From positions 143,490-207,489 of the IMG/VR virus record IMGVR_UViG_3300042544_001590: DNA of 64,000 nt; one strand, written 5' to 3'. Below are positions 35,296 through 59,154 of this stretch, piece after piece; the stretch's first letter is position 1; each line of letters opens with the position of its first letter. Below the pieces are notes generated by a model. It saw only the letters and a list, made by a program, of their open reading frames with translations. It had not been told where the DNA came from and searched no databases. The translations under genes were made by a program, and so were the position numbers.

Positions 35296-37103
35296 TATTC
35301 GCTATCCGTGATTAGGATTCTATCTCCGATTGTTTGTGGTCTATAAAAATATGGGAACTTGAAAAATGGAAGTGTTGTGGTTTGGTTCACAAATTCCTCA
35401 TCAACCCCCTCATAGACAGGATTCCAGCTTATGAAGGAGATTCCGTTGAAAATCTCGTTTCCGTTGCGGGTTCTGATCTTGTCAACACCTTCCAATCCAA
35501 GAATTGTGGATGTCAGGTCTGATAGATCAAGTCTTTGTCCCAGAGAATTGTTGAGAGGATTGAAGAAATCCAGAATAATATTAATAATTCTCTTTTTCAG
35601 GTTTTCCTTGTTGATCTTGGAATTGGATGTGCGAACGATTTCCAGCTTGGATGTCAAATACACATCCTTATCAGCAGCTTGAGCCGAATATCCAATATCA
35701 AATGCCGTGTAGATCGGATCACGGGGAACAACTTCATGACTAAGCATCTTTTTATCGGAAGTGGAGTCGATGATTAGGTTTTTCAGGCTGTTTGAAAGGA
35801 ATGGGGGATACTCCGCATCCGTTTGAACCACGAATTTGGGAACCACGAAGATATTCACATTGTTGAAGTCACAAGAATCCGCAAAATTCACCTGATTTAG
35901 TATAACCCTGTTCGATTTGTTGGGGTCAACGCAGATACGATAAAAATAATCAATATATTCCCCAATGAATCGCTTGTTATTCACCACTTCCACCGATTGG
36001 AGAACATTGGAAAGGTTTTTGGTGAGATATGTATCATAATCCACCTCAGTCACAAGCCTAAGCTGGGAACTGAGATACTTGGGAACATTCTGGCGAATCT
36101 GATCCACTGTCTCCCCATCGGAGATTGCCGTGGAATTGGCAGTATTGGAGAAATTCAGGGTAGCATTGTTTGTCAGGTCAATTATGGATGAAGGATCGAC
36201 GGTAATCACATCATTGTAGATTGCCGTGAATTGGGAAGTGTTGAAATTGAACAATTTGTTACCATTGATGACGTTCTTGCTGATAATACCCTTGTTATTA
36301 TCACTCAGGATATAATAAACGGCAACCTGATCACCTTCGGCAAGTTTCTTACCAAACACATCATTACCGAACTTGATTTCATAATGACCATTCTCATTGA
36401 GACGAACGCTGTAATATCTATCGGAATCGGGAGTGAGGAACAGATTGTCAATCTCTTCCCATTCATACCAAGTGGCATCTCCGATTTCTTTCACATAAAC
36501 ACTGAGAGTTCCATGGGCAATGAAACGGTCATCGTTCTCATCCACCAGATTATCCACAACAACAGGGAACGTTTCAAATTCCTTACCTTCCGCTGTGTAG
36601 ATGGGGTATTCCTGAACGGTTCCCTGATACAGAATGAGATTATTTTCAATGGAATCAATTTTCTCCGATCCGCTTGTGGTTTTCTCAAAGGAGAAATCGT
36701 TCAGGACGGTGTATTGGATGTTATTGACAAGGAAATAGGAATACTTGCGGAGAGTGTAGTTCCCCGCTGCTAGAGAGGCACTGGCGGTGCAAGTAACGGG
36801 AACAAGGGACGTTTGCTTGCCCGTAGGATTGTAACCCACAAGGTTCACAATCTTGTTCATGTTTTCATAGAGCGATGTCTGGGAGAAAAGGGCTTCCGAT
36901 CCCGTCTGGTTCAAATAGAAAAGCAGGGTGTGGTAGCTGTAAGCGATAATGTCGATGAAAGAAGCCAGATTACTCCCCTCGTAATTCTGATCCGTGAATT
37001 TGGGATTCTCATTCAACCGTTGAATGATGAAATCTTTCAGGGACAACGCATCAAAGTTGATATAGGCGTTTTTGGGCAGGTTATACTCAAGAGAATCATT
37101 CAT
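35295..37103 (-). CDS. baseplate wedge subunit (T4 gp6-like)
   Basis: DF..LK, FTD.NYEGSNL, GYNP, FGNDVFGK, ET.DQIR, Q.RLVT..DY. Confidence 0.88.
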   Translation of the reverse strand: MNDSLEYNLPKNAYINFDALSLKDFIIQRLNENPKFTDQNYEGSNLASFIDIIAYSYHTLLFYLNQTGSEALFSQTSLYENMNKIVNLVGYNPTGKQTSLVPVTCTASASLAAGNYTLRKYSYFLVNNIQYTVLNDFSFEKTTSGSEKIDSIENNLILYQGTVQEYPIYTAEGKEFETFPVVVDNLVDENDDRFIAHGTLSVYVKEIGDATWYEWEEIDNLFLTPDSDRYYSVRLNENGHYEIKFGNDVFGKKLAEGDQVAVYYILSDNNKGIISKNVINGNKLFNFNTSQFTAIYNDVITVDPSSIIDLTNNATLNFSNTANSTAISDGETVDQIRQNVPKYLSSQLRLVTEVDYDTYLTKNLSNVLQSVEVVNNKRFIGEYIDYFYRICVDPNKSNRVILNQVNFADSCDFNNVNIFVVPKFVVQTDAEYPPFLSNSLKNLIIDSTSDKKMLSHEVVPRDPIYTAFDIGYSAQAADKDVYLTSKLEIVRTSNSKINKENLKKRIINIILDFFNPLNNSLGQRLDLSDLTSTILGLEGVDKIRTRNGNEIFNGISFISWNPVYEGVDEEFVNQTTTLPFFKFPYFYRPQTIGDRILITDSE

Positions 37104-40773: not shown

Positions 40774-41541
40774 ATGGGCAAGAAATTTGATGCTATCTAT
40801 GAAGCTGTTGTGAGTCGTTCCGAAGTGGGGGGTTATCTTCCCGGCGATATCATAAAATTTAGGGATGGATATAAAAACACGGAAACTTACAAGTATATGC
40901 CATTCACTCTCAGGAAAGAAGTGGATGAATTGGCGACTTGCGGATTGAACATCAAAGTCGTTCAGGTTGGAGACAAACAATCAGGATATTCCATTGGAAA
41001 TCAATTCAAACCAGCATCCCAGATCGTTCTCACCATTGCTGCTGATCATGGTGGTGGTAGAACTTATGGTAGAGTGGTTGTCTGTCCCGCCATGGTTGAT
41101 ATGGTGGATGTGAGCGCAGGAGTTCCGGTTCCCGATCAATTCAAGCGCAAGGATACTGTCATCATCAAGCCCAAACCCTTAAAAATTGATCCAAAGATCA
41201 TCACCAATGTCACTGACAAGGGAAATGGTAAGAATACCCCCACCGATCTGAAATTGGCGGGAGAATCCAAGGCTTGGGAATCCACCAAGGAATTGGCTGA
41301 TTTGTATATGGAATCTTTGGGGGAGGTTCCCCTGAGAAATATGCCTCCAGAAAAATCTTTAGGGGAGGTTCCTCGGCGTGATCCGAACACACAACCCCCA
41401 ACAAAAAACAGATTGAATTTGCTTTATGATAGATTACCAGAACTTAAAAAAGCTATAGAAGATGTGAGGTATGGTTCTTTTAAAGAGTTCTATAACAAAA
41501 TTTCAGAGTTTAAGGATTTTCTTGATAACGAGTTTGTTTAA
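40774..41541 (+). CDS. hypothetical late protein
   Basis: MGKKFDAIYE; duplicated SLGEVP.R near the C-terminus. Confidence 0.6.
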   Translation: MGKKFDAIYEAVVSRSEVGGYLPGDIIKFRDGYKNTETYKYMPFTLRKEVDELATCGLNIKVVQVGDKQSGYSIGNQFKPASQIVLTIAADHGGGRTYGRVVVCPAMVDMVDVSAGVPVPDQFKRKDTVIIKPKPLKIDPKIITNVTDKGNGKNTPTDLKLAGESKAWESTKELADLYMESLGEVPLRNMPPEKSLGEVPRRDPNTQPPTKNRLNLLYDRLPELKKAIEDVRYGSFKEFYNKISEFKDFLDNEFV

Positions 41542-41569
41542 AAATAACAATCAAATAATAAATAACATC

Positions 41570-42286
41570 ATGGCACAATATAATAACAAAGATCAGCGCA
41601 ATCTGGAAGAACTCCTTGAAGAAGGGTGGATGGATCGTCTCAAGGCACGGGGAGCCGAAGCTTTGGGTTCCGTCAAAGGAGTGGGGCAACAAATCAAAGG
41701 TGGCTTTCAACAAGCTGCTGGCAGTGGCTTGAGTAAGGCTGGAGATTGGCTTGAAAGCGATAAGATTTCTCGTAAAGGGGATAAATACACGCAACAAGGT
41801 CAAAAAAGTGAGCGAGAAGGAAGCGTCTCTGGTCACAATGCCAAAGTCCAGTATCTTCAGAAGAATATTGACAAACGTATTGACTCATTTGTTGCCGATA
41901 TCAAAAATGATATTAAAAAGCTTGGTCTGGACATTGGTAACATTGAAATCGTGTCTGGTATCAATGCTGCTCTTGGACAACTCAAGAAAAGCGTGAGCGG
42001 TGCAACACCTCCTCCTTTACCACAACAATCTGGCGCAACACCTCCTCCTTTACCCCAACAATCTGGCGCAACACCCCCACCACTTCCAAAACAACAAACA
42101 CCGGAGCCAGAAGAGGATGAGCCGGAAAATCCCGTGGAATACTCTTACAGAAAAGCTATTAGTAGGAAGAAAAAAACACAACCAAACACTAATCCCCGTA
42201 AAAGTAAGGTGAGAAAAGACCCATTTGCAAAATATGCCGCTCCCGAACAGGAAGAGGATTTGGACAAGATGTTTTGGGAACGCTAA
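41570..42286 (+). CDS. hypothetical late protein with PPPLP repeats
   Basis: TAAATA-N5-ATG 41570; LEELLEE-G. Confidence 0.6.
   Translation: MAQYNNKDQRNLEELLEEGWMDRLKARGAEALGSVKGVGQQIKGGFQQAAGSGLSKAGDWLESDKISRKGDKYTQQGQKSEREGSVSGHNAKVQYLQKNIDKRIDSFVADIKNDIKKLGLDIGNIEIVSGINAALGQLKKSVSGATPPPLPQQSGATPPPLPQQSGATPPPLPKQQTPEPEEDEPENPVEYSYRKAISRKKKTQPNTNPRKSKVRKDPFAKYAAPEQEEDLDKMFWER
41996..42094 (+). repeat. 3 x 33-bp coding tandem repeat (SGATPPPLPQQ)
   Basis: Seen directly. Confidence 0.9.
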
Positions 42287-43197
42287 AACAATTCCTCAAG
42301 CTGTAACAAGCAAGCAATACCACAAATCTCCCTGTCCGTAACGGATATCATCTTAAACAGGTTCTCCGCAATGATAAGGATAGCCTGTTTTTTTGTGGTA
42401 TCATCCAAGGATAAATCATAAAAATAGTTCAACAGGTCTTTCAGAAGGGATTCGTGATCGGAATCGAACAATTCCTCGTTCTCAATCAGAAATTTGCGTG
42501 TTTTCAGGGTATCTCCCGATTTGAGATTGGTGTAAATCAAATCCATCACCTGATTGGTGTCTTTTTTCGTCTCAATGGAGAGAATCCCTGATTTTGAATA
42601 TTTTTCCAATTCATTGATACATTTCCTGATATCGGGATAATGGCTTTTGATCAGGGCAACCAATGGTTTCTTCTGATCATCAGGAATCTCAATTTCCTCT
42701 TTTTTCAGAATCTCCAGACACCTACGAGTAACATCTTTCAGGGATGTGTGGAGTGTGAGACTCTGGCAACGCGATTGGAGGGCGGGAATGATGCGATGCT
42801 TGTAATTGCCCGTGAGAATGAAACGTGTGGTGGATGAATAGGATTCCATGACATTCCTCAAAATTGCCATGGAACTTTTTGATAGATAATCAGCCTCATC
42901 CAAAATGACAATTTTCAATCCCCCGTCAAAGCTCTTCGTTTGGGAGAATCCGATAACTTTATCCCTGATCGTATCCACCCCATTCTCATCGGAAGCGTTA
43001 ATGTAAAGATAATCACAATTTAGGATATCCTTTGCCAATATTTTGGCCAATGTTGTTTTACCAACACCACAAACCCCCGTCAATAATAGATTTGGAACAT
43101 CTTTACCAAAATCTTCGATGATTTTTCTGGTGGTGTCATCCACCATTAAATCGTCTAGCGTCTGTGGTCTGTAACGTTCTGTCCAAGGATTGCTCAT
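42283..43197 (-). CDS. clamp loader ATPase subunit (T4 gp44/RFC-like)
   Basis: W.ERYRP, GVGKTT, NASDE.G, ILDEAD, ALQSRC, PDIRK. Confidence 0.93.
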   Translation of the reverse strand: MSNPWTERYRPQTLDDLMVDDTTRKIIEDFGKDVPNLLLTGVCGVGKTTLAKILAKDILNCDYLYINASDENGVDTIRDKVIGFSQTKSFDGGLKIVILDEADYLSKSSMAILRNVMESYSSTTRFILTGNYKHRIIPALQSRCQSLTLHTSLKDVTRRCLEILKKEEIEIPDDQKKPLVALIKSHYPDIRKCINELEKYSKSGILSIETKKDTNQVMDLIYTNLKSGDTLKTRKFLIENEELFDSDHESLLKDLLNYFYDLSLDDTTKKQAILIIAENLFKMISVTDREICGIACLLQLEELF

Positions 43198-43946
43198 ATG
43201 CCTACCAAACCAATAGCATGGTTTGAGCGATTGTCAATAGTCCGAACCAAATTTGCACAATCCAATAGACTGTCATATGTGCCAACGTCGAACCAAAATC
43301 CATCCAATTTCTCAACACCAACACCTTCTTTATCATTCATCATGCGAATCAGGTCAACAATTTCCAGTTCTCCTCTAGCAGATGGTTTGACTTTTTTAGC
43401 CATTTCCACAACTTCATTGGAAAACACATAAAGACCAATCACTGCATCTTCGGAAATAAATTCTTTCGGTTTCTCCACAATTTGAATAATATTGCCATCT
43501 TCATCTGTTTCAACCACACCATAGGCGGATGGGTCTTTCACTTTATATGTGTAGATGGTGTTCGGTTGTGGTTGTATTGGGGAATTACCAATAATAACAT
43601 TATCACCAAGAATCAGGCAGATTTCATCTGCATCTTTGACAAATTCTTCCCCAACGATAAAAGCATCGACTAATCCTTTGGGAGAATCTTGGATTGCGTA
43701 TGATAGATTTAATCCGAATTTACTCCCATCTCCAAGTAGAATCTTGAATTGTTTTTGTTGATCCTCGTCGGCATTAATGATGAGGATATCAACATATCCC
43801 ATATCTTTCAGCGTTTGAAGTGGAAATGCGATGCAGGGCTTGTTGAAAATTGGTAAAAGTTGCTTTGATATAACCTTGGTAATCGGGTATAATCTCGTAG
43901 CTTTTCCGCCCGCCAAAATTAGACCACGTTTAATCGTTTCTTGCAT
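43194..43946 (-). CDS. rmlA: glucose-1-phosphate thymidylyltransferase
   Basis: GLILAGG..TRLYP.T...SKQLLP, LGDN, EKP, SARGELEI, W.D.GT. Confidence 0.9.
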   Translation of the reverse strand: MQETIKRGLILAGGKATRLYPITKVISKQLLPIFNKPCIAFPLQTLKDMGYVDILIINADEDQQKQFKILLGDGSKFGLNLSYAIQDSPKGLVDAFIVGEEFVKDADEICLILGDNVIIGNSPIQPQPNTIYTYKVKDPSAYGVVETDEDGNIIQIVEKPKEFISEDAVIGLYVFSNEVVEMAKKVKPSARGELEIVDLIRMMNDKEGVGVEKLDGFWFDVGTYDSLLDCANLVRTIDNRSNHAIGLVGI

Positions 43947-44847
43947 ATTTCTCCTCTATTTCGTTTTTAATTCTCTTATCTTCCGCTTGTTTCTCAAGCA
44001 TTTTCTCAAAACATTCCTTCATCACATCCTTCTCAAATCGCATCTCATAGATTTCCTTTGATTTGGAGCCATCCAGAACACAATTGCTTCTTCCAGTGGC
44101 AATGGGAAGATCGGCAAGATATACGAATTTCCAATTATCGTTGTGGAATCCGTATTCTTTCATGACATCACACACTTCCTGTGTGGTTAATGCCTGTGGA
44201 TTGATGACATTGTAGATGTTCTGTCCTTTCCATTTACCGACTTTTTTAATCAAAAGATTCTTCACAAATTCGCAGAAATCGGGGATATATGTCTTGGAGT
44301 TCTTGAAATTGATCAAATCGTCGTATTGTCTAATTTTGTTCAAATAATTCCTATTAGATGATTCGTAATGGAATGGCATACGAACCCTCAGAATGATATT
44401 ATCCATATTTTTTGATAAATTTTCAAAAGCGTGTTTTGATTTGGAATAAAATGAAGCCCTATTACAGAATAATCCATAATTTGGGGAATCTTCCTCGTTC
44501 CACACTTTCTCATATCCATCATAAACACAACCAGAAGAAACATGGAGATAATTCACTTCATGTAATTGACATACAGCATTTACTTTTAAAGGAGAAACTG
44601 TATTGAGTTCCCAACACAATTCTTTTTTCATCTCCGCTTCATCAATGTTGGGTCTTCCCGTGAATCCCGAACAGTTAATCACGGTATCAATGGTATTATT
44701 GAGAAGAAATTTGTGGAGGATTTCCACTTTATGATAATCAATCTCTTCCGCTGATTTGATAATCACGTTAAAATCGTTTTTCAAATGATTGTAAAGATGA
44801 TTACCAACGTAACCCTTCCCTAAAATTAATAAATTAAGCTTGCTCAT
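43930..44847 (-). CDS. RmlD-like NDP-4-keto-6-deoxyglucose (epimerase/)reductase
   Basis: Likely ATG 44847; G.GYVG, GFTGRPNID, SSGCVY, YSKSK, LRVRMP. Confidence 0.8.
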   Translation of the reverse strand: MSKLNLLILGKGYVGNHLYNHLKNDFNVIIKSAEEIDYHKVEILHKFLLNNTIDTVINCSGFTGRPNIDEAEMKKELCWELNTVSPLKVNAVCQLHEVNYLHVSSGCVYDGYEKVWNEEDSPNYGLFCNRASFYSKSKHAFENLSKNMDNIILRVRMPFHYESSNRNYLNKIRQYDDLINFKNSKTYIPDFCEFVKNLLIKKVGKWKGQNIYNVINPQALTTQEVCDVMKEYGFHNDNWKFVYLADLPIATGRSNCVLDGSKSKEIYEMRFEKDVMKECFEKMLEKQAEDKRIKNEIEEKYARND

Positions 44848-45055
44848 ATGTGTTTTCAATAAATTCCCGAACGTTTTCCAAATTACAAATATCATTTTCG
44901 TATAGATATTCCTGTATGCCCTCACATAAATCATCAGCCATTTGGGAAATCTCTTCGTCATCCACAGTATGAAGGAAATCCTGTAAATCCATAATGGATT
45001 TTATGATTTTCTCTTCGTGTAGTTCCAATTTTTTCAGTATCGTATTCTTTTTCAT
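44834..45055 (-). CDS. hypothetical protein
   Basis: 73 aa; first gene of the rml/gp44 operon. Confidence 0.55.
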   Translation of the reverse strand: MKKNTILKKLELHEEKIIKSIMDLQDFLHTVDDEEISQMADDLCEGIQEYLYENDICNLENVREFIENTYEQA

Positions 45056-45125
45056 TTATGTAGGGATTTATTTAGGTTTTGGTTGATGTCAATACGAAAT
45101 ATGGGTTGATTTGTTAAATAGTATT

Positions 45126-46229
45126 ATGCCAAAGATTTCCCAATTAACATCTGCAACATTACCTATTGTTGGTAATGAGGTGGCTATCATCAATCAAAAT
45201 GGAACCACTTATTCAAGTGCTTTAAGTAATTTTATTGGGGGTGGATCGAACGTGTCATCCTTATCTTCAAATTGGCAGAACACTTACACCACATTTTCCT
45301 CAAATTCTGCCAATTATGCAAAGGTTAATGTCAATAATAATTTTTCATCTACCCAAACGTTCACCACAGGTTCAATAAATGTCGGAGGATTTCCTTTATC
45401 TGCGACAGTGAGTAATAGTTTGTTTGGTGGTAATCTCGCAGGTTTCGGTGCTACGTGTGCATGTTTCTCCAATTTCTTTGGTTATAACGCAGGTAACGGT
45501 GCCACATGCGCATCCAATTCCAATTTCTTTGGTCAAGGCGCGGGTTACAATACCACAAACGCATATAGCTCCAATTTCTTTGGTTCAAACGCAGGTTTCG
45601 GTGCCACAAACGCATCCAATTCCAATTTCTTTGGTTCAAACACAGGTTTCGGTGCCACAAGCGCATGTAATTCCAATTTCCTTGGTTCAAACGCAGGTTA
45701 CGGTGCCACAAACGCATCCAATTCCAATTTCCTTGGTAGATACTCAGGTAACGGTGCCACAAACGCATCCAATTCCAATTTCCTTGGTTCAAACGCAGGT
45801 TTCGATGCCACAAACGCATCCAACTCCAATTTCCTTGGTAGATACGCAGGTAACGGTGCCACAAACGCATCCAACTCCAATTTCCTTGGTAGATACGCAG
45901 GTTACTATGCCACATACGCATCATTCTCCAATTTCCTTGGTCAAGGCGCAGGTAACGGTGCCACAAACGCATGTCACTCCATATTCATTGGTTCAAACGC
46001 AGGTAACGGTGCCACAAACGCATGTCACTCCATATTCATTGGTTATAACGCAGGTTTCGGTGCCTCTCTGTCAGCTTCAATCGCCCTTGGCTCTTGTGCT
46101 ATCCCCACATCACACAATCAATTAGTGTTGGGGTCGTCAGCATACCCACTATCAACTGTTAATAGCGGCAACTGTTTAGTTGTAAACATAAATGGAACTA
46201 TGAAGAAAATAGCGTTGCTTTCCGTTTAA
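45126..46229 (+). CDS. fibre/adhesin-like protein with 17-aa beta-roll repeats
   Basis: TAAATA-N5-ATG; MPKISQL N-terminus; SNF(F/L)GxxAGxxATxAxx repeats. Confidence 0.7.
   Translation: MPKISQLTSATLPIVGNEVAIINQNGTTYSSALSNFIGGGSNVSSLSSNWQNTYTTFSSNSANYAKVNVNNNFSSTQTFTTGSINVGGFPLSATVSNSLFGGNLAGFGATCACFSNFFGYNAGNGATCASNSNFFGQGAGYNTTNAYSSNFFGSNAGFGATNASNSNFFGSNTGFGATSACNSNFLGSNAGYGATNASNSNFLGRYSGNGATNASNSNFLGSNAGFDATNASNSNFLGRYAGNGATNASNSNFLGRYAGYYATYASFSNFLGQGAGNGATNACHSIFIGSNAGNGATNACHSIFIGYNAGFGASLSASIALGSCAIPTSHNQLVLGSSAYPLSTVNSGNCLVVNINGTMKKIALLSV
45471..46065 (+). repeat. about 12 x 51-bp coding tandem repeat
   Basis: Units start at 45471 + 51n. Confidence 0.95.
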
Positions 46230-46234
46230 TGCTA

Positions 46235-46242
46235 TATAAATA
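46235..46242 (+). promoter_or_regulatory. canonical T4 late promoter
   Basis: TATAAATA-N5-ATG 46248. Confidence 0.8.
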
Positions 46243-46247
46243 GCAAT

Positions 46248-47120
46248 ATGATAAAAAATGCTATTTTTCATATTGAGGGGGGGTTGGGTAAAAACATTGT
46301 AGCCACTTCGGTTATCCGTTCCTATAAAAAGGAACATCCAATCCACAACATTATAGTAAATTCTGCATATCCTGACATTTTTCAAGGAAATCCTGATATT
46401 GATAGGTGTTATCTATTGGGAAATACTCCGTATTTTTATGAGGACTTTATCTTTGATAAAGATTGTGAAATATTTGCACATGATCCATATAAAACAACGG
46501 CACATATCACCAAACAACAAATATTGGTGAAATCGTGGTGTGATATGATAGGGGTTACTTATGATGGTTTAAATCCGAATATCCATTTTAATTTTAGGGA
46601 AATGGAAATATCCAGAGCGTTACTACCTCAAACTGATAAACCCATTCTCATCTTTCAACCATTTGGAGGCGCACAAAACCAAGAATTTCCATACTCATGG
46701 ACAAGGGATATTCATCCTTTCATTGCCCAAGAAATAATCAATAATCTTAAAGAACAATATACAATATTGCATATTTGTCACCCCCACCATCCTCAATTAC
46801 AAAATGTGATTCGCTATGATAAAAATCAAAATAAAAAGATTTTATGTGCCATGTTGAATCTTTCTAAAAAAAGAATTCTAATCGACTCTTCCTTACAACA
46901 TGCTGCGGCTGCCATGGGATTACCATCAACAGTGGTGTGGGTTGGGACACAACCGGAAGTATTTGGTTATGATATGCATAATAATATAACTCCCCATGTT
47001 ACCTTTCCAAAGGGTAATATTAATTCGTATTTATATGATTATAGTTTCAATGGAATCATCCACGAATGCCCATATGATAACATTTATCAAATTTTCAATA
47101 TCGAAAACATCATAAAATGA
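46248..47120 (+). CDS. GT9-like (GT-B) glycosyltransferase
   Basis: GGLGK, NPDID, IDSSLQHAAAA.G.P..VVW. Confidence 0.75.
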   Translation: MIKNAIFHIEGGLGKNIVATSVIRSYKKEHPIHNIIVNSAYPDIFQGNPDIDRCYLLGNTPYFYEDFIFDKDCEIFAHDPYKTTAHITKQQILVKSWCDMIGVTYDGLNPNIHFNFREMEISRALLPQTDKPILIFQPFGGAQNQEFPYSWTRDIHPFIAQEIINNLKEQYTILHICHPHHPQLQNVIRYDKNQNKKILCAMLNLSKKRILIDSSLQHAAAAMGLPSTVVWVGTQPEVFGYDMHNNITPHVTFPKGNINSYLYDYSFNGIIHECPYDNIYQIFNIENIIK

Positions 47121-47908
47121 GAGATATATTTTATGTGTCCGGCTTACCCAGATCGGGAAGCACTCTTCTGATGAATCTGATGGCACAAAATCCTAAAGTA
47201 TTCTGTACTCCTACATCGGGTTTGAATCAATTGATGAATAATATCAAAACATCGTGGGGTAATATCATTGAACATCGATCTGATAAAAACGCTGGTAATG
47301 ATGAAAATTTGAAGCGTATCCTAAACACTATATTACATTCCTACCATAATACCGAAAAACCGTATGTCATCGACAAATGTAGGGGGTGGGGATTCTCCAT
47401 TGAAATGTTGGAGGCAATCACCAATAAAAAAACCAAGATCATAGCACCAGTTAGAGATATAAAGGATGTTCTTGCGTCTTTCGAATTATTATATCGAAAG
47501 GGTTCCTACAAGTTCAACCCCCAAGGACCAATGCCCCAATGTTTAACAACTGAAGGTAGGATGATGCATTGGGCAAGTTTGGATGGGGAAGTCGGTGCTG
47601 CTTACGCAATATTAAAGGATGCTTTTTTAAGAGGATTGGGGGATAGATTCCTTTTGGTGGATTATGATTATCTGACACATAATCCTAAAATTGTCATGGA
47701 CGTAATTTGGGATTTCCTCAATATACCCAAATGTGAACATGATTTTGAAAACATATTGAACCAAACACCAGAAGATGATGGTGTTTATAATTATGTCGAT
47801 TTACATAAAATTAAGAGTAAAGTCGCACCATCCAGTTCAAAAGCTAAAGAAATTTTGGGGGATGAAATATGTAAAGGATTGGATGGTTATGAATTTTGGA
47901 AGAAATGA
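47117..47908 (+). CDS. sulfotransferase
   Basis: 5'-PSB GLPRSGSTLL; 3'-PB VRD..DVLAS. Confidence 0.85.
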   Translation: MRDIFYVSGLPRSGSTLLMNLMAQNPKVFCTPTSGLNQLMNNIKTSWGNIIEHRSDKNAGNDENLKRILNTILHSYHNTEKPYVIDKCRGWGFSIEMLEAITNKKTKIIAPVRDIKDVLASFELLYRKGSYKFNPQGPMPQCLTTEGRMMHWASLDGEVGAAYAILKDAFLRGLGDRFLLVDYDYLTHNPKIVMDVIWDFLNIPKCEHDFENILNQTPEDDGVYNYVDLHKIKSKVAPSSSKAKEILGDEICKGLDGYEFWKK

Positions 47909-47920
47909 CTAAATAATGAT

Positions 47921-48289
47921 ATGTCCATATTAGGTAATAACACACTACCAACACCACCCCCGACGCCCAATAAGGAAGTCCTATTGAAACAAGCGGTATC
48001 CCGTATCAAAAATCTTTCCAAGGAATGTTTCGGTAATTTGGTGAGAACCCAACGAGAAGGTATTAAGATTGTTTGGGAGAACGAAAACCTCACCCCGCAG
48101 GAAATAATTGATGAGATGGGGTCGGATGTTTTTAAGATTTTTCAATTCCATGGGGAGCTTACACAATTTATTCTGATGTTGGCCCAAGAGGATGGAGCAA
48201 CGGTTGATGTTAAGTATCCCACCCACTCATTCACCGCAAACCTTAGTGCTGGAACTATCACCGTCCACGATACACCTTACCAACAATAA
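47921..48289 (+). CDS. hypothetical late protein
   Basis: TAAATA-N5-ATG. Confidence 0.6.
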   Translation: MSILGNNTLPTPPPTPNKEVLLKQAVSRIKNLSKECFGNLVRTQREGIKIVWENENLTPQEIIDEMGSDVFKIFQFHGELTQFILMLAQEDGATVDVKYPTHSFTANLSAGTITVHDTPYQQ

Positions 48290-48293
48290 TTAT

Positions 48294-49322
48294 ATGAAAA
48301 AACAACCGACATTGGGAGATATATATGGACAAATGCTGAACAGTGTTCAAGTCGTTCAAGAGAACGCACAGGAAAACATCAACAAGTCCAAAAAAATTCC
48401 CAAGCAATCCAAAAACGCTTTCAACGAAACAAATCCCTTGCAAAAAGGTGGTCCATCTGAGAAAAGCGGTTATCACAAAGCTCTGAATGATACTTATGAT
48501 GAGGATGAAGAGCGTAAGTATGCTAATCTTGATAAACTTAAAGAAAAGTTGAAGAATCCCAATCTTTCTGATAAACAGAAGGAATCTCTCAAAAAAGAAA
48601 TTGCAAGAATGGAGAGTGGAATCCAAAGAGAGGAAGCGGAAGAGAGAATTCACAAGGAATCTAAAAAAATTGCAAGAGATAGACTAAATACATTTATGAC
48701 TAAGAAATCTACATTTGATAAGTTGTTTGAATCCGTTATGGGTAATAATTTTGACCAGCAAGAGGATGCTCAAGAAGTTGATGCCCTCGGCCTTGGTGAT
48801 GCTCCCATGGACGATGAGTTTGGAGATGACGAATTCGGTGACGACGAAGACCAAGTTACATTTACTCTTGATCGTGCCACAGCACAAAAGCTTCACGATG
48901 TTTTGATGGGAGTTCTTGATGGTGGTGGTATGGAAGATGAAGGCGATGATCTGGACTTCGATACTGAAGATGATTTTGGAGGAGACGATGAAATGGACGA
49001 AGACAACGAAGAAGAAGACGATTTCTCCTATGACGAAGACGAAGAGCGCGGAACCTTCCCAACTGACAAGGTTGGTAATGATGGAACCGTTGGTGCCAAG
49101 GATGGCAAAGGTGGTGGTCAACAACACAAGCTCCAAGGTCGTAGCAATAAGGTCAATGGTCGTCCTCAACCAAAAGGTCAAAAAACCAAGGTAGTGGGAA
49201 CCACTGACAAGGTTGGTAATGACGGTGATTACGGTCATGCTCTCCATGGTGCAAAGCAACCCGATATGGGCAAGCAGAACAAAGTTTCAGACATTCGCCA
49301 AGCGGAAGATTTCTTCCGTTGA
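48294..49322 (+). CDS. acidic low-complexity protein, possible prohead core/scaffold, with nested start at 48696
   Basis: Asp/Glu-rich; internal TAAATA-N5-ATG; TDKVGNDG twice. Confidence 0.55.
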   Translation: MKKQPTLGDIYGQMLNSVQVVQENAQENINKSKKIPKQSKNAFNETNPLQKGGPSEKSGYHKALNDTYDEDEERKYANLDKLKEKLKNPNLSDKQKESLKKEIARMESGIQREEAEERIHKESKKIARDRLNTFMTKKSTFDKLFESVMGNNFDQQEDAQEVDALGLGDAPMDDEFGDDEFGDDEDQVTFTLDRATAQKLHDVLMGVLDGGGMEDEGDDLDFDTEDDFGGDDEMDEDNEEEDDFSYDEDEERGTFPTDKVGNDGTVGAKDGKGGGQQHKLQGRSNKVNGRPQPKGQKTKVVGTTDKVGNDGDYGHALHGAKQPDMGKQNKVSDIRQAEDFFR

Positions 49323-49345
49323 ATGTGAATTAAAAAAATAAACCT

Positions 49346-49380
49346 AAGAAGAGGGGATCGTGATGATTCCCTCTTTTTTT
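49346..49380 (+). terminator. intrinsic terminator
   Basis: AAGAGGGGATC-GTGAT-GATTCCCTCTT followed by a T run. Confidence 0.85.
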
Positions 49381-49393
49381 GTTAAGTATTATC

Positions 49394-50191
49394 ATGAAGT
49401 CCTTTCTGGAATTTTTTGAAGAGCGTAACGGTGTTCTATTGGAATACCGTCACAGGGATGGTTTTGGGGGTATTAAACAATCCCTCCATGCCAACAACAA
49501 AAAAGGGGGCAACATCACCCGTGATCCTCTGACACGCAAGATACCATGGAACAAAGGACCGTATAAGAAAATCAGAACAGCGGGAGAGATTCTGATCGGA
49601 GATGATCTGTTGAAAGAATTGGGTTCTATGGGAGGCGTGGAGTTCAAGGATGGTAAGGAGATCAAAAGAAAAAATAGTAATCAAATTTTAAAATTGTTCA
49701 CAAATCTTCATGGACAACAATGTGGAAAAATAGTGGAGGTAAAAAACCGAAACGCTTTTACTGAAAAAACAGATTATTATGGTAATTGTGTTGATCTGTG
49801 TAATCAATTTACTGTCGATACTGATGAAGATGATTATGACGGTGATTATGAAAATTATTATGAAGATGATGGTAGCGGCGCAGCAGAATGGATGATCAAC
49901 GTTTTATCAAATGATAATAATGTTATTAGGTTAAACAAAGAAACCTTTGATCAGTATGTAGACATTTCAGGTATCCCACAAGACAGAATTGAAAATTTAT
50001 CAAGTGATGAGTATTATTATATTATAGATGGTAGAGGACACCCTAACGGATATGTTAATTTTGTTTTATATGGTGAGAATAGGAATGGTGATGATATACA
50101 TTATTTTTTCAATGTATCACCTGATCCTAATTTAGAAAATAAAAAATTGCCGAAATTGCCAAATGGATATGGGGCAGGTTCTAATATGTGA
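49394..50191 (+). CDS. hypothetical protein, putative internal head protein
   Basis: TAAGTA-N5-ATG; MKSFLEFFEE. Confidence 0.6.
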   Translation: MKSFLEFFEERNGVLLEYRHRDGFGGIKQSLHANNKKGGNITRDPLTRKIPWNKGPYKKIRTAGEILIGDDLLKELGSMGGVEFKDGKEIKRKNSNQILKLFTNLHGQQCGKIVEVKNRNAFTEKTDYYGNCVDLCNQFTVDTDEDDYDGDYENYYEDDGSGAAEWMINVLSNDNNVIRLNKETFDQYVDISGIPQDRIENLSSDEYYYIIDGRGHPNGYVNFVLYGENRNGDDIHYFFNVSPDPNLENKKLPKLPNGYGAGSNM

Positions 50192-51084: not shown

Positions 51085-52854
51085 ATGGCAGCTAAAAAGA
51101 AACATGAATACATGGGGAATCCGAATCTCCCCACTGCCAATGCGGTGTTTGAATATACACCGGAAATGGTGGTGGAAATTCAAAAATGTAAAGAGTCTCT
51201 AATACATTTTGCTGAAAATTATTTTTATATTATCGATCCCGATGAAGGTAAAAAGGTTATTCCACTCTTTGATTACCAAACGAGATTATTGAAGGCGTTT
51301 GAAGATTTCAAACAAAATATAGTTTTGAGTTCTCGCCAGAGCGGAAAAACGACGGTGATGACTATATTAGCATTACACGTAGCATGTTTTGAAAATCATA
51401 AAAATATTGTTATTGTTGCGAATAAAGAGGAAACAGCTAAAAACATATTCAAACGTGTTAAGTTGGCTTATGAAGAATTGCCTAACTGGTTAAAACCCGG
51501 AATTAAAAAGTGGGGAGATACTTCAATGGAATTGGCGAATGGTAGTTGTATTGAAATTTCAACCACTACTGGAAACGCAGCGAGGGGTAAATTTGTCAAT
51601 TTGTTGCTATTGGACGAATTAGCATTTATCGATCCGCCAAGCATAGTTGAAGACTTCTGGAGATCGGTGTATCCAACAATTTCCCGCGCTAAAACATCTA
51701 AAATTCTTATTACATCAACACCAAACGGAGTTGGTAATTTGTTTCATAGATTATATACTGGATCGGTAAAAGGTGAAAACAGATTCCACTATGAAAGAAT
51801 TGATTGGTGGGAAGTTCCGGGTCGTGATGAAGAATGGAAAAAAGATCAAATTAAAGATTTAGGTTCCCACGAGGCGTTCATGCAGGAATATGGGAACGAA
51901 TTCCTAGACAATAGCCAACAATCCATTGATGAAGCCCTATTTGACCGTCTCAAAAACGAATGCCGTGAACCCAAACACATCCTCAAGGAAGGTGCCTATA
52001 AAATATGGGAAGAATATGATCCCGAAAAAATATATGTTATTGGGGGGGACGTTTCCGAAGGTCTTGGTCTGGATGCATCCGTTCTCCAAGTTCTGGATGT
52101 CACCAATCCCAAGGAAATTATACAAGTTGCCGAATACTGGACAAATACCAAAGGGCCATCGGAATTCACCAACGAAGTGGTGGATGTTTGTGGACATTGG
52201 GGAAATCCTCTGCTATTGATTGAGCGAAACAACCAAGGAACGGGTGTTTGTGACACTTTGGCGAACACCCACATGTATCAGAACCTTGTGTCTTGGGGAG
52301 CTAAGGAAGCGCATAAGAATAAGCAGAACGGTATGATTTCCCATATCAACACCAAATATAAAGCGGTGGAGAACCAAAGATATTTCGTCAATGAAGCGCA
52401 ATCTGTGGTATTCCGCAACATTGACACGCTGAAAGAATTTAAGAATTTTGTGCGCTACCCCAATGGCTCTTGGAAAGCCAAAAGTGGGGAACACGATGAC
52501 CGTGTGATGGCATTCGTATGGGCATTGATGGCTCTCTACAAGGATATCACGGAATTATATTTTGAAATTGAGGAATTGGATGATTGCGATAAGCCTCTTG
52601 TGATCAAACCCATTGATCAGGGACTCCACCAATACAGATCGGCAACTTCCATCTACACCAACGAAGAAGTGCCTAAAATTGAGAATTCCAACATTGCCCC
52701 CATGCTCTTTGGAGGATACGGGGGGGCTGCTGTTAGTGACATGGCGGAATTGGAAGCTGCGGGATGGGCATTGCCTGATCATTCGGTGTTCTCCAATCCT
52801 GAAAGGAATATCAATCCTGATCAGTGGGCAGCGATGGAGAAATATTTCGGTTGA
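51085..52854 (+). CDS. terminase large subunit (T4 gp17-like)
   Basis: Y.GNPNL, SRQSGKT, LDELAF, STPNG, QEY, DVSEG.G.D, IERN, HDDRVMA. Confidence 0.95.
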   Translation: MAAKKKHEYMGNPNLPTANAVFEYTPEMVVEIQKCKESLIHFAENYFYIIDPDEGKKVIPLFDYQTRLLKAFEDFKQNIVLSSRQSGKTTVMTILALHVACFENHKNIVIVANKEETAKNIFKRVKLAYEELPNWLKPGIKKWGDTSMELANGSCIEISTTTGNAARGKFVNLLLLDELAFIDPPSIVEDFWRSVYPTISRAKTSKILITSTPNGVGNLFHRLYTGSVKGENRFHYERIDWWEVPGRDEEWKKDQIKDLGSHEAFMQEYGNEFLDNSQQSIDEALFDRLKNECREPKHILKEGAYKIWEEYDPEKIYVIGGDVSEGLGLDASVLQVLDVTNPKEIIQVAEYWTNTKGPSEFTNEVVDVCGHWGNPLLLIERNNQGTGVCDTLANTHMYQNLVSWGAKEAHKNKQNGMISHINTKYKAVENQRYFVNEAQSVVFRNIDTLKEFKNFVRYPNGSWKAKSGEHDDRVMAFVWALMALYKDITELYFEIEELDDCDKPLVIKPIDQGLHQYRSATSIYTNEEVPKIENSNIAPMLFGGYGGAAVSDMAELEAAGWALPDHSVFSNPERNINPDQWAAMEKYFG

Positions 52855-54809: not shown

Positions 54810-54854
54810 ATTGCTGTTTAGGAAATTTTTGGCGGGGATTTGCTAAATAGTAAT
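54810..54854 (+). promoter_or_regulatory. RNA hairpin enclosing the sheath late promoter
   Basis: About 20-bp stem with G-U pairs and one mismatch; TAAATA 54844-54849, ATG 54855. Confidence 0.6.
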
Positions 54855-57257
54855 ATGGCAACACGCACAATAAATTCGGCTGGGGTAGAGATATTTGAGA
54901 GAGATTTAAGTCTAGTCGCACAGACGAACGTAGGCACGAATGTCTTTGTAGCTGGATATACCCCCCAAGGTTATTCCGACGAGGTTTTGAAAATCACCAC
55001 CAGAGATGAACTGGAATCAATCTACGGAACCCCAACCAATAGCGCAGAACGCTATTTCTATTACACTGTCCGCGAACTACTCAACTCTCCTGCAAACATC
55101 TACACTTTCCGCCTTCCATATGGATCGGGAACTGGAGATGGATTTGGAACACAACATTCCGCTCTTGTATATCCTGTTGTTGCCGCTACTCCAACTGATG
55201 TAACAACAACCAGAAGCCTTGATCTTTCTGCTGCAACCTATTTCCTTGGAAAACCCTATCAGATTACCCTATCTGAAACGGAATTTGCCCAAGCCATGGA
55301 AGGAACCCTCTTCGATTGGTCTTCCACTGCTGGAAGTAGAGCGGAACTTATTTCTGGATTTTCCACTGACCCTCTTAGTGCGCTAACCTTAAAACAACGT
55401 ATGGGCAATGCTGGTGTCATTGTCTTTGATAAAGCCCAAACCACGATCAATAGCCAATTTGAAGGTTATTATGTCGGTATCGCAGATAACGTCAATCTCA
55501 ATCCTGCATCCAATTTTGATGCAATCACCCGCGCCTATACCACAAGCCTTACTGCTGGGGTGATTTCGGATTATACCCAGATTCCAAACGGAACTCTCCA
55601 ATTCAATCTCTCAGCTACTGCTGGAGGTGCCACTGGTAGTATCTCCCAAGTCATGGAGAACCTTACCGATTATAACATCGATGGTAGGGAAGATGATGAC
55701 CTTCTGAATGTTGGTGTGTTTAAGCTCCGCAAGAGTGTTTATGCAACCGAAGCGTTTAAACTGGATTATGTGCTTGATGACCGTATCGTGGGTTCCATTG
55801 ATACCTTCAGAACTCAACTCAATCCAAATGGTGGACCATCGGTTCCATTCTTCCTTGAGACTCAGGATACCAATTCCCGCAACGTGGAAATCATGGTCAA
55901 CCCATTCATCTCCAACAAATTCACACAATCCTCGCTGGATTCTTCGGGTAATCCTCTCAAGAAAATCCGTGTGGTGACTGAGAGCTTGCTTAATACTGAA
56001 TATGCATCCATTTCTGCTGCATTAGGTATTACAACCACTACCTCTACCGCGCCCGCTCTTAGTGCTAACTTAACGGTAGCCAATACATATGCTCTTTCTG
56101 GTCTTGATGCAAGCGTGGGAGTCGCAAATGCCCTGTATCCTCTTGGTGTTTACAACCCTGTCAAGATTACCCAAAAGATCATCGGCAATGTTCCAACCAA
56201 GATCAACCGCGCTCTGGAATCCATCAAGAATGATGAAATCTATGACATTGATGTGGTTGTCGAAGGTGGTCTGGGAACGATCTTTACGATGATGTCTGCT
56301 GCGGGAACTGATTACTATGATGACACCCTCTACAATACCGCTCTGAAGACCAAGGTGGATACCCTGAGAACTTCGGGTGACATTTCCAATGATGCGGTTG
56401 CAACCGATCTCCGTGCCAATTACAGCGCGATCTTCAACCAATTTGAGAATTTCTGTAACCTTCCAAGCAATACTGGTGGTCGTGGAGACTGTGTGTTCAT
56501 TGCTGATCCAATCCGCCACATCCTTGTTACGGGTAGAAACACCAAGATTCTCTCCGATAGAAACAAAAATTTCCAAAAGGATGTTTATTGGGCAATGCGT
56601 CACCAATTTGAATTGGAAAACACTTCCTATGCTGCCACCTATGGTAACTGGATTCTGGGTTATGATGATTTCAGCGGTGAAAAGGTTTGGCTTCCATTCT
56701 CTGGATACCAAGCTGCTATCATGGCCCGTAGCGATGCTGCGGAATTCCCATGGTCTGCTCCTGCCGGATTTACCCGTGGTCTGGTGACTAATGCTCTGGA
56801 TATTGCAATCAATCCGAATCAGAAACAGCGTGATGAGTTCTACAAGATCAACATCAACCCTGTCATGTTCTCTCCCGCCCAAGGTGTGGTTGTGTTTGGT
56901 CAGAAAACTATGAGCCGCAAACCAAGTGCATTTGATCGTATCAATGTCCGTAGGCTCTTCCTCGCTCTGGAAAGACCTACCAAGAAAGCTGCTCAATTCT
57001 TCGTGTTTGAACCCAACAACGAATTCACCCGCACTCGCTTGGTGAACGTTCTCACTCCGATCTTCGAATTTGCGAAACAGAACGGCGGTTGCTACGATTA
57101 TCTGATCGTTTGTGACGAACGGAATAATACTCCCCAAGTCATTGATACCAATGAGTTGAAAGTTGACATTCTTATCAAACCAACGAGAACCGCCGAGTTT
57201 ATTTTAATAACTTTTACGGCTACCCGTAGTGATGCCAACTTTGAAGAGTTGATTTAA
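54855..57257 (+). CDS. contractile tail sheath protein (gp18-like)
   Basis: S.GVEI.E.DLS, PW.APAG..RG, INP, FGQKT, SAFDRINVRRLFL, FEPN. Confidence 0.95.
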   Translation: MATRTINSAGVEIFERDLSLVAQTNVGTNVFVAGYTPQGYSDEVLKITTRDELESIYGTPTNSAERYFYYTVRELLNSPANIYTFRLPYGSGTGDGFGTQHSALVYPVVAATPTDVTTTRSLDLSAATYFLGKPYQITLSETEFAQAMEGTLFDWSSTAGSRAELISGFSTDPLSALTLKQRMGNAGVIVFDKAQTTINSQFEGYYVGIADNVNLNPASNFDAITRAYTTSLTAGVISDYTQIPNGTLQFNLSATAGGATGSISQVMENLTDYNIDGREDDDLLNVGVFKLRKSVYATEAFKLDYVLDDRIVGSIDTFRTQLNPNGGPSVPFFLETQDTNSRNVEIMVNPFISNKFTQSSLDSSGNPLKKIRVVTESLLNTEYASISAALGITTTTSTAPALSANLTVANTYALSGLDASVGVANALYPLGVYNPVKITQKIIGNVPTKINRALESIKNDEIYDIDVVVEGGLGTIFTMMSAAGTDYYDDTLYNTALKTKVDTLRTSGDISNDAVATDLRANYSAIFNQFENFCNLPSNTGGRGDCVFIADPIRHILVTGRNTKILSDRNKNFQKDVYWAMRHQFELENTSYAATYGNWILGYDDFSGEKVWLPFSGYQAAIMARSDAAEFPWSAPAGFTRGLVTNALDIAINPNQKQRDEFYKININPVMFSPAQGVVVFGQKTMSRKPSAFDRINVRRLFLALERPTKKAAQFFVFEPNNEFTRTRLVNVLTPIFEFAKQNGGCYDYLIVCDERNNTPQVIDTNELKVDILIKPTRTAEFILITFTATRSDANFEELI

Positions 57258-57327: not shown

Positions 57328-59154
57328 ATGAATGGGCTTATTGAAGATAACAACACTAAAGAGTATATTTTAAATCGTAAAAATAATGGAATGCCCTTAT
57401 CGAAATCTTTATTTAAAAGAAAATTTCAAAGTATCTTAAATGAAATAAATGATCATAATAACAAATACCTCTTAAAAAATGATAAATTTTCACAAGAAGT
57501 GTATAATTGGATATTTGATATTAAAGAAAATCCAAAATGTCCGCTAACTGGATTGGATTTAAAATTTGATTATCATAAATTTAAATACAGACCAGTTAGA
57601 GGGAAAGGCAAACATTTACCAGACGTTCAACAAATTATAACAAGCAAAAGATTGAAAAATTTTAGTTATAAGAAGTTGTATGAGTCTAAAAGAAATGTTG
57701 AGCCAGTTGAAATATCATTTGAAAAAATAAGAAAATTATTAAATAAAAATTTCAAAAATATTACTAATTTTGGGGGGTTTACCACCAAATTCTTATCAAG
57801 ATTTCCAGAATATTATAATTATGTGGATTCGGATCAATTTTTACCATGGTGTGAATCCTTTCAGGAAAAAATATATTGTATTATCAACAATATTCCAGAA
57901 TCAATAGGTAAAAAATACATGGGATTTGGAAAGGGATATTCCAAATATGCTGATTGGGTGGAGTATCGTAGAAGTAAAGCTGCCAAAAAAATGAATGCTG
58001 CCGTAGATTACGACAAAGATAAGACCATATTAGAACTTAATAAAAGAATCGAAGAGTTAAAATTAGCCAATAAAGCAACCAATAATTTACGACAATCTTT
58101 TATGGGAACCGATCCAAATTTAGTTAGAAGTATTTTTACCCATACCTCAGAGTATCCAGATATAAAATTCAGCAATAGGGTATTTTTATTACTCAATGGG
58201 CAACCAGTTCCAGATAAAGGTTATATAAAACCAGTATTTTTCAGTTTGGATAAAGGATATAGTATGAGATTTTCATCTCAAAATGGAACTTCCAAACCGG
58301 AACAAGAATTATTTGATTGGTTGGGGGGATACATACCAAATCTAAAAAAAGATAGAACGGTGTTAAATGGTAGAGAAATAGATGTATTTTCTGAAGAGAA
58401 TGGTGTAGGAATTGAATATGATGGTGTATATTGGCATAATTATGAAATAGTGGGTGATAAATCATTATTTTTGAAAAATCAATTGGCGAAATCAAAAAAC
58501 ATAAGATTATTACACATTTTTGAAACTGAATGGCTACAAAAACAGGATATTGTTAAGAGTATTATTCTTTCTAAATTTAATATTTTTGAAAATAAATATC
58601 ATGCTAGAAAATGTGATATTAGAACGGTTGATAGTAAAATTTGTGTTGATTTTTTAAACGAAAATCATTTACAAGGTAAAGATAATTCAAAATATAAATA
58701 TGGACTCTATCATAAGGATGAGTTGGTTTCGGTGATGACGTTTGGGCAACGAACCATTACGAAAAATCCACAAATGGAATTGATTAGATTTTGCAATAAA
58801 AAAAATACTACAGTTATTGGAGGTGCTGGTAAATTATTCAAACATTTCATTAAAACGCATAATCCAACATATGTTAAGACATACGCAAACGCCAGAATAA
58901 GTGATGGTGATATGTATAAAAAATTAGGATTCTCTTTCAAACACCACTCACCCCCAAATTATTGGTATTATAAACCAGAAGCAGCCAAAAAGATCAAATT
59001 GATGCATCGAAGTGGTTTTCAAAAACATAGGCTGTCTGGGATTCTTGAAAGATTTGACAAGGGTAAAACGGAATGGGAAAACATGAGCGATCATGGATAT
59101 AAGAAAATCTACGACTGTGGCAACCTTGTTTTTGAATATCAAAGAGAAAATTGA
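57328..59154 (+). mobile_element. Hef-like putative homing endonuclease with C-terminal GNAT/Mom-like domain
   Basis: S..E, EID, IEYDG.YWH, HIFE.EW nuclease motifs; then NHLQG, ELIRF, GGA.KL, Y..LGF, IYDCG; AT-rich; between sheath and tube. Confidence 0.7.

Follow-up and report, generated by a model that had tools for sequence, protein, structure and literature searches.

A tandem array of 17-residue coils in a fibre-like gene of an uncultured T4-like lake phage, and its candidate role as a variable binding surface

The gene considered here lies at 45126..46229 in a 64,000-nucleotide stretch of viral DNA (the window), which forms the last 64 kb of the 207,489-bp IMG/VR virus record IMGVR_UViG_3300042544_001590 (G000:C1:143490-207489). 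It encodes a fibre-like protein of 367 amino acids, the centre of which is specified by a tandem array of near-identical 51-bp units. The array is probably the shaft of a homotrimeric fibre or adhesin, in which coils are shuffled by exchange between units and seven positions per coil (slots) are under selection, providing a variable host-binding surface without a mutagenic enzyme. The pattern itself is real and statistically supported, and represents known processes acting in an undescribed family of 17-residue phage-fibre repeats. The parts of the gene, in window coordinates, are the following:

45126..46229, plus strand: fibre-like gene, 367 amino acids from its ATG (open reading frame list and translation)
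45126..45419, plus strand: N-terminal part, residues 1-98, a conserved 'PKISQL...G.E....NQ.G.T' head followed by a poorly modelled linker
45420..46082, plus strand: 13 coils of 17 residues (residues 99-319), a predicted beta-solenoid shaft (units in register, AlphaFold2 model, beta-helix matches)
45471..46031, plus strand: eleven complete, near-identical 51-bp units (Tandem Repeats Finder and unit alignment)
46083..46229, plus strand: C-terminal cap, residues 320-367 and the stop codon (many inter-chain contacts in the trimer model; near-identical to the L006 lineage)

Repeat anatomy and modelled fold

Tandem Repeats Finder reports the array at 45467-46064 with a period of 51, 11.7 copies, 83% matches and no indels, and the eleven complete units are followed by a partial twelfth that ends at 46065. 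Counted by motif there are 13 coils, including a degenerate first coil (45420) and last coil (46032), and their consensus is N-F-[LFI]-G-x-x-A-G-x-x-A-T-x-A-x-x-S. An initial annotation of the window had described six codons as invariant even at silent sites, and this was borne out in all eleven units (codons 2 TTC, 4 GGT, 8 GGT, 12 ACA, 14 GCA and 17 TCC). Such invariance goes beyond codon bias, because the shares of these codons elsewhere in the genome are just 28-44% (TTC 44% of Phe, GGT 38% of Gly, ACA 29% of Thr, GCA 31% of Ala and TCC 28% of Ser). The alleles it had listed for the variable slots were likewise recovered: YN/QG/SN/RY at slots 5-6, AAC/TAC/TTC at slot 9, GGT/AAT/GAT/TAT at slot 10, AAC/TGC/AGC/TAC at slot 13 and SN/YS/CN/SF/CH at slots 15-16.

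Two further claims fared less well. That changes spare codon position 3 proved to be a tendency only, with variable columns at 9/17, 8/17 and 5/17 of positions 1, 2 and 3, respectively. Reassortment of alleles between non-adjacent units is weakly suggested by a four-gamete test that was positive for 2/10 slot pairs, a result that recurrent single-base change could also produce. Local duplication of neighbouring units is, by comparison, indicated by the runs at slot 3, which reads FFFF-LLLLLL-I along the eleven units (the partial twelfth also has I), together with a silent AAT/AAC marker at slot 16 that changes along the array.

The mechanically assigned start of the open reading frame is an in-frame TTG at 45111, upstream of the ATG at 45126, and the N-termini of orthologues read MPKISQ or MSTLNNRMPKISQ. 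The N-terminal motif is common to many other viral proteins with different distal parts (L040-L055), and the N-terminal part may serve as a virion-attachment module. Compared with the orthologue in L006, it shows synonymous and non-synonymous differences (pS and pN) of 0.239 and 0.047, respectively; this is purifying selection, and the gene is therefore taken to be real. The last 195 nt of the gene, starting 48 nt upstream of 46083, have 4 differing sites relative to L006. When the N-terminal 97 residues were compared with the Atlas, no score exceeded 0.83 (T4_gp9_10_N and Mtd_N were among the matches), and these matches were set aside as leads only.

The variable slots belong to the architecture of a family and are not special to this array. 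Across 1,280 units from 120 proteins, the same seven slots (5, 6, 9, 10, 13, 15 and 16) have an entropy of 2.7-3.8 bits and are rich in Y, N, S, Q, G, D and R. In 73-93% of family units the residues at slots 1, 2, 7, 11, 14 and 17 are N, F, A, A, A and S, respectively, and 58% have T at slot 12; because the search pattern preset slots 4 and 8, their conservation in the family is uninformative. This lineage often has cysteine (TGC/TGT) in its variable slots, for example at slots 13 and 15 here and at 6, 10, 13 and 15 in L006; the residue is rare in these slots family-wide and makes up 1.15% of residues genome-wide.

An AlphaFold2 model built with 24 sequences places residues ~100-290 in a solenoid with one short strand (slots 1-3) per coil, at a predicted local distance difference test score (pLDDT) of 94-98. 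The linker (residues 38-69) has a pLDDT below 50, and the C-terminus is also poorly modelled. In structural comparison the highest-scoring match was the tail appendage of Staphylococcus phage Andhra (Z 18.3), followed by TibA and Vag8 (both 15.9), Ag43 (15.3), phi29 gp12 (15.0, root-mean-square deviation (rmsd) 3.0 Å over 242 residues) and the cyanophage Pam1 tailspike (14.5). Foldseek against the PDB returned generic solenoids only, with template-modelling scores of 0.1-0.2. Model and comparison agree with the initial proposal that the array encodes a solenoid with one coil per unit. The beta-roll proposed at the same time is probably a right-handed beta-helix and not a left-handed roll of the YadA type, because left-handed helices (UspA1, LpxD, GlmU and YdcK) superpose at an rmsd of 8-10 Å, against ~3 Å for right-handed ones.

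Modelling of three copies of residues 95-367 supports packing as a homotrimer, with a score of 0.91 against 0.00 for the best control, a partner pLDDT of 90, and at least 97% of contacts shared by three runs. The pass mark was calibrated on two-copy complexes (21/30 solved pairs and 0/23 single chains pass), which makes it rough for three. In this model, slots 1, 3, 4 and 5 lie at the interface in 13/13 coils, slot 16 in 12/13 and slot 17 in 10/13; slot 3 meets slot 3 at the trimer axis and slot 1 meets slot 4 of the neighbouring chain. Slots 6-14 have no contact with other chains and slot 15 has one. At the C-terminus, the predicted interface comprises residues 321-323, 325-338, 340-345 and 350-367.

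The expectation that variable residues face outward is thus upheld in part. Slots 6, 9, 10, 13 and 15 are off the modelled interface, and would be exposed given that their residues (R, Y, Q, D, H, N and S) are ill-suited to a small coil core; slots 5 and 16 touch the neighbouring chain. With these last two at the chain seams, a groove is probably flanked by slots 5-6 of one chain and slots 15-16 of its neighbour.

Homogenisation of units and diversity of slots

Orthologous genes were taken from four assemblies found by identity (L002-L005) and ~30 IMG/VR contigs (L006-L035). Their scaffold codons are uniform inside each array and differ between lineages: at slot 11 this array, L006, L019 and L033 have GCC and L015, L018, L024 and L027 have GCT, at slot 12 this array has ACA and L019 has ACC, and slot 17 is TCC or TCT by lineage. 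For 88/139 units the nearest unit is in the same array, against 15 expected, and no unit is common to any two lineages, even at protein level. The idea of a constraint on the scaffold codons themselves does not stand, for other lineages use other synonymous codons, uniformly per array. The duplication or conversion within the gene that the initial annotation proposed agrees with the closer likeness of units to their own array than to others. Because scaffold codons are uniform per array yet different across lineages, the silent-site uniformity reflects concerted evolution by duplication, deletion or conversion of units, and not codon constraint.

Against L011, over window positions 43200-49750, identity is ~85% upstream of the array and 93.6% from the array onward. 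Within the gene, 30/294 nt differ in the N-terminal part and 4/195 nt in the C-terminal part. Relative to L011, a mosaic boundary (recombination) lies in or near the array.

The slots behave differently from the scaffold. In this array, diversity is 0.439 at positions 1-2 of the variable slots and 0.026 at four-fold degenerate scaffold sites, a 17-fold excess, and 13/14 of the former positions segregate against 1/7 of the latter (Fisher p=0.00085). Eight related arrays give ratios of 1.7-8.1, and one distant, old array with saturated silent sites gives 1.0. Between lineages, four-fold scaffold differences rise to 0.368 from 0.141 within arrays, whereas variable-slot differences are 0.495 within arrays and 0.570 between them; the near equality of the last two values indicates that homogenisation removes silent differences and not those at the slots. 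The informative contrast is that of slots with four-fold scaffold sites. A check of the dN/dS type between whole units gave a pN/pS of 1.5, and the Nei-Gojobori pN/pS within slots is ~1 (0.359 vs 0.348); each is uninformative alone. This diversity fits selection for diversity, as the initial annotation had suggested.

A neutral variable-number tandem repeat (VNTR), in which the slots are merely unconstrained surface positions that drift, would need no diversifying selection. It would account for the variability of the same slots throughout the family, for the within-slot pN/pS of ~1, and for the lack of excess slot substitutions in close strains. Such drift should, however, leave diversity at slot positions 1-2 at or below that of four-fold silent sites, and the excesses found here and in the eight related arrays run against this expectation, as does a homogenisation that cuts silent differences and hardly touches the slots. 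Drift as the whole explanation is accordingly considered rather improbable.

The variable codons recall the products of a diversity-generating retroelement (DGR), a likeness that the initial annotation had noted and doubted. A DGR or another targeted mutator would write NNC or NNT variation into the slots, and many slot codons (TAC, TTC, TGC, AGC, GGC, CGC and CAC) are what AAC-derived NNC codons would be. C-ending codons are moreover a minority in the genome (AAC 31%, TAC 27%), and high slot diversity beside low silent diversity is also what a mutator would leave. The evidence against it is extensive, and such a mutator is regarded as exceedingly improbable. A search for reverse transcriptase (PF00078, RVT_1) in the complete 207-kb genome gave 0 candidates and recovered matches in control genomes. 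The protein has a single locus in the genome, and blastn-short of the array against the genome found no template copy, with only four chance matches of 14-15 nt outside the array. Sorted by base, departures from the consensus affect C 25 times, A 22 times, T 11 times and G 8 times, showing no adenine bias; the adenines of AAT (slot 1), ACA and GCA are unchanged across units, and arrays are identical across eight samples. The array is thus excluded as a DGR target by the lack of a reverse transcriptase, of a template repeat and of adenine bias, and the doubt was justified. The NNC appearance arises as slot codons descend from C-ending codons in which positions 1-2 have changed and the third base is inherited.

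Unit number differs among close relatives, as assembled. The DNA of the N-terminal (294 nt) and C-terminal (195 nt) parts is identical among L002/L005, L003, L004 and L006/L009, and these have 6, 7, 5 and 15 units, respectively. They are distinct strains, because their flanks are only 98-99.75% identical. The L002 array equals the 15-unit array minus 459 bp, that of L003 the same array minus 357+51 bp, and that of L004 the same array minus 459+51 bp, plus point changes. At most of the deletion joins there is an identical stretch (71, 39 and 37 nt); the L004 deletion of 51 bp lies amid point changes, without an identical stretch. Other lineages have ~15-30 units. The characteristics of tandem-repeat VNTR adhesins are therefore seen here, with units alike within arrays and 5-30 units among orthologues, in assemblies that are short-read throughout. 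Eight contigs from eight metagenomes share the same 15-unit allele, and a ninth contig departs from it by one silent base. Pieces of the window's array were matched exactly in three further runs, and a fourth run contains a variant piece with 6 differences. Judged by these sequences, the array is stable within a clone and different between strains and lineages.

Unit-number differences could alternatively reflect collapse of short-read assemblies at identical stretches, with the true arrays being equal. The short arrays are indeed the long array minus whole units, joined for the most part at exact 37-71-nt repeats; they stand on contigs of 2.3-4.6 kb and one of 27 kb, and Logan contigs at k=31 are unable to resolve the array. 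Collapse is nevertheless judged unlikely. Contigs with short arrays depart from the 15-unit strain by 0.25-2% in their flanks and so belong to separate strains, L004 has point changes inside the array as well, the 15-unit array was assembled identically eight times, and distant lineages differ in unit number with entirely different sets of units. Exact repeats of at most 71 nt are also shorter than usual reads and than the largest assembler k-mers.

Under the favoured reading of a shuffled shaft with selected slots, one 51-bp unit would encode one 17-residue beta-solenoid coil, formed by F2, A7, A11, T12, A14 and the two glycines, with N1, L/F/I3, G4 and S17 packing three chains together. Slots 6, 9, 10, 13 and 15 would face away from the trimer axis, and slots 5 and 16 would line the chain seams. 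In-register recombination or slippage between units would add, delete and homogenise coils, and selection would maintain and renew differences at the seven slots. The predicted outcome is a binding surface variable in length and chemistry, most likely directed at a host surface polymer.

Genome context and relatives

Direct terminal repeats are present in the record, which has a completeness rating of 100%. Four further genes of the window, translated here and throughout with genetic code 11 only, bear on the identity of the virus:

35295-37103: baseplate wedge protein (phrog_219)
42283-43197, minus strand: gp44-like clamp loader (Gp44_lid)
51085-52854: T4-type large terminase (Terminase_6N/6C)
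54840-57257: contractile phage sheath

This combination of T4-type terminase, contractile sheath, baseplate wedge and gp44-type clamp loader identifies an uncultured T4-like myovirus that is represented by metagenomic sequence. The locus was found in lake and freshwater metagenome runs from 18 studies.

The fibre gene is part of a conserved block at 42283-47908, comprising the clamp loader, a nucleotidyl transferase, an RmlD-type epimerase and a 73-aa open reading frame (all on the minus strand), the fibre gene, a gene for a 290-aa protein (phrog_8954, no function assigned) and a sulfotransferase gene (these three on the plus strand). The block occurs at least partly, and in the same order, in each of 4 relatives, and as a whole in L002. 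A T4 late-promoter consensus, TATAAATA, is present at 46235-46242, 6 bases ahead of the start of the 290-aa gene; this motif is without enrichment in the window (5 seen vs 4.9 expected). In two runs a contig joins 46987 to 47173 and skips 185 bases. It probably comes from another organism or variant, because it has unrelated loose ends on both sides and just 22 letters on its shorter side. A second tandem repeat lies at 42002-42075 (period 33, 2.2 copies, 97% matches), inside an open reading frame (41471-42286) without a family match. Directly after the sheath gene, an open reading frame of 608 aa (57328-59154) has matches to PHROGs of homing/HNH endonucleases and a weak match to a Mom-like DNA modification protein.

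Searches with the 367-aa protein found no Pfam family at E up to 1 and no PHROGs match, and a profile of 24 relatives had no match among PDB sequences at E up to 1. The locus likewise had no megablast match among GenBank phages, and tblastn found only gp257 of Sphingomonas phage PAU and a 'virion structural protein' of an archaeal virus, both across the repeats only. A word search collected 392 relatives, several of which contain Peptidase_S74 or are named 'tail fiber domain-containing protein'. Neighbours in the Atlas have YadA_head, Peptidase_S74, PTL_trimer or collagen domains. The highest viral fold match is a phage 'YadA-like head domain' protein, followed by proteins of a Tenacibaculum phage, Prochlorococcus phage P-SSM5 and phage PAU. 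The 17-residue repeat family is undescribed, with no Pfam model in the copy searched.

The same repeat also occurs in phage PAU gp257 (L056), in Tenacibaculum phages and in many Bacteroidota proteins, which hints that the host of the lake phage is one of the Bacteroidota. The host of 'Sphingomonas' phage PAU has been reclassified as Sphingobacterium (PMC3738902). Very large viral open reading frames with the same 17-residue units in a different architecture were seen at L036 2-6295 (>2,097 aa) and L037 2-3289 (>1,095 aa); both are cut by the contig end, so the lengths are lower bounds.

The protein might form a trimeric solenoid that is not a tail fibre, such as a head or neck decoration fibre, a whisker or a non-virion adhesin. 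Its gene is separate from the baseplate and tail genes, with the clamp loader and sugar-nucleotide genes on one side and the sulfotransferase gene on the other, and it matches no PHROG tail family. Furthermore, conservation is highest at the C-terminus and lowest in the shaft, an unusual arrangement in a tail fibre that binds with its tip. Against this stand the distant relatives with Peptidase_S74 (e.g., P0006 and P0110) and the 'tail fiber domain-containing protein' name, and the best structural neighbours, which are phage tail appendages and tailspikes. A location other than the tail is therefore held to be a minority possibility, if a tangible one.

Several observations weigh against the interpretation of the array as the selected, shuffled shaft of a receptor-binding fibre. 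The fibre gene adjoins replication and sugar-metabolism genes and lies outside the baseplate block, and a Pfam scan of the 367-aa protein did not find Peptidase_S74; its putative presence in the virion and binding role are suggested by homology and fold resemblance. Exposure of slots 6-15 is deduced from their absence from the interface and their residue types. The array does not change rapidly on the time scale of sampling, given that the 15-unit allele is the same in eight samples and the units of the window are the same in three further runs. In ~99% identical strains, point changes in slots (2 in ~105 nt, L004) are no commoner than changes in the flanks, and a site-specific mutation bias could in principle be the source of the slot excess. 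Finally, deletions at identical stretches of 37-71 nt are expected of recombination or slippage and equally of assembler collapse, all assemblies are short-read, and Logan contigs (k=31) break inside the array.

Significance and comparison with known systems

Phage receptor-binding proteins determine host range. In uncultured aquatic phages, variation of these proteins has mostly been inferred from poor read recruitment, e.g., in 'metaviromic islands' (PMC3909814). The present locus offers one concrete route to such variation, consisting of a homogenised array of minimal coils with seven diverse positions and a coil number that varies between ~99% identical strains. The repeat family is common, with members among hundreds of proteins of viruses and Bacteroidota, and a description of its fold and slots would help to annotate 'hypothetical' fibre genes. 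In addition, the repeat could serve as a compact scaffold on which to study or engineer binding surfaces.

A bolder idea is that the coils, as exchangeable modules, read a periodic polymer of the host (O-antigen, capsule or S-layer glycan) in a 'programmable' way, in which slots 5-6 and the 15-16 of the next chain form a ladder along the groove and one or a few coils correspond to each polymer repeat. This is thought improbable at present. If it were true, swaps, gains and losses of 51-bp units would re-tune specificity and reach, as the repeat-variable residues of transcription activator-like (TAL) effectors do, and host range would be partly predictable from slot sequence.

TAL effectors themselves have near-identical DNA units, variation at a few fixed codons, recombination between units and a variable unit number, all of which the fibre array shares. 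However, they have a helical fold, a DNA ligand, a proven code of one repeat to one base and two variable positions, compared with seven in the fibre. The resemblance that the initial annotation drew to repeat-variable residues would thus be one of evolutionary pattern only. Mtd of a Bordetella phage, the target of a DGR, is of the phage receptor-binding type, as the fibre putatively is, and also has NNC-type variation at defined surface positions. Mtd-type DGR requires a reverse transcriptase, a template repeat and adenine-specific changes, and the fibre array lacks all three.

AIDA-I, TibA and Ag43, with 19-residue repeats, are also regular, short-period beta-helix adhesins, and the last two are among the structural matches listed above. 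They differ in being monomeric and bacterial, with another motif and 10-11% identity. TibA receives its glycans from a dedicated heptosyltransferase; that the fibre might be glycosylated too is speculation prompted by the adjoining sugar genes.

YadA-type heads come closer. They are trimers of short-period solenoids with a motif of small residues, Gly and Asn-Ser; UspA1 and CbpF are among the fold matches of the fibre, and neighbours in the Atlas and BFVD are labelled as YadA heads. The canonical YadA head repeat is ~14 residues long (GxNSVAIGAxSxAx; PMC9543794), in contrast to 17 residues and another motif in the fibre. PF05658 (YadA_head) has no match in the fibre protein (E up to 1) or in 23 relatives (24 aligned, E up to 0.1). 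YadA heads are left-handed trimers with the repeat strand at the axis. The fibre trimer is modelled with slot 3 at the axis, and its rmsd pattern favours a right-handed helix. Membership of the YadA_head family is rejected on hidden Markov model, period and motif. For BpaC, which has 42 tandem layers, it has been proposed that DNA repeats let 14-residue layers come and go, an adaptive device that would alter length and binding surface (PMC9543794). Aquatic phage genomes are known to vary at fibre genes that contain repeats and YadA-like parts (PMC3909814).

Systems of this kind are already known, and no new mechanism is called for. Trimeric beta-helix tailspikes bind host polysaccharide on their lateral faces or in the grooves between chains. 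The tailspikes and appendages of phi29 (gp12), Andhra and Pam1, which are the best structural matches, resemble the fibre in that each chain has its own beta-solenoid and three stand side by side, as modelled here. They are only 7-9% identical to the fibre, which has no recognisable enzymatic domain, and the coils of the fibre are minimal (17 residues, one DSSP strand) and regular, and come from a near-perfect DNA tandem array. Such trimeric beta-helix tailspikes and appendages are the closest functional analogues of the fibre, with YadA-type heads also close.

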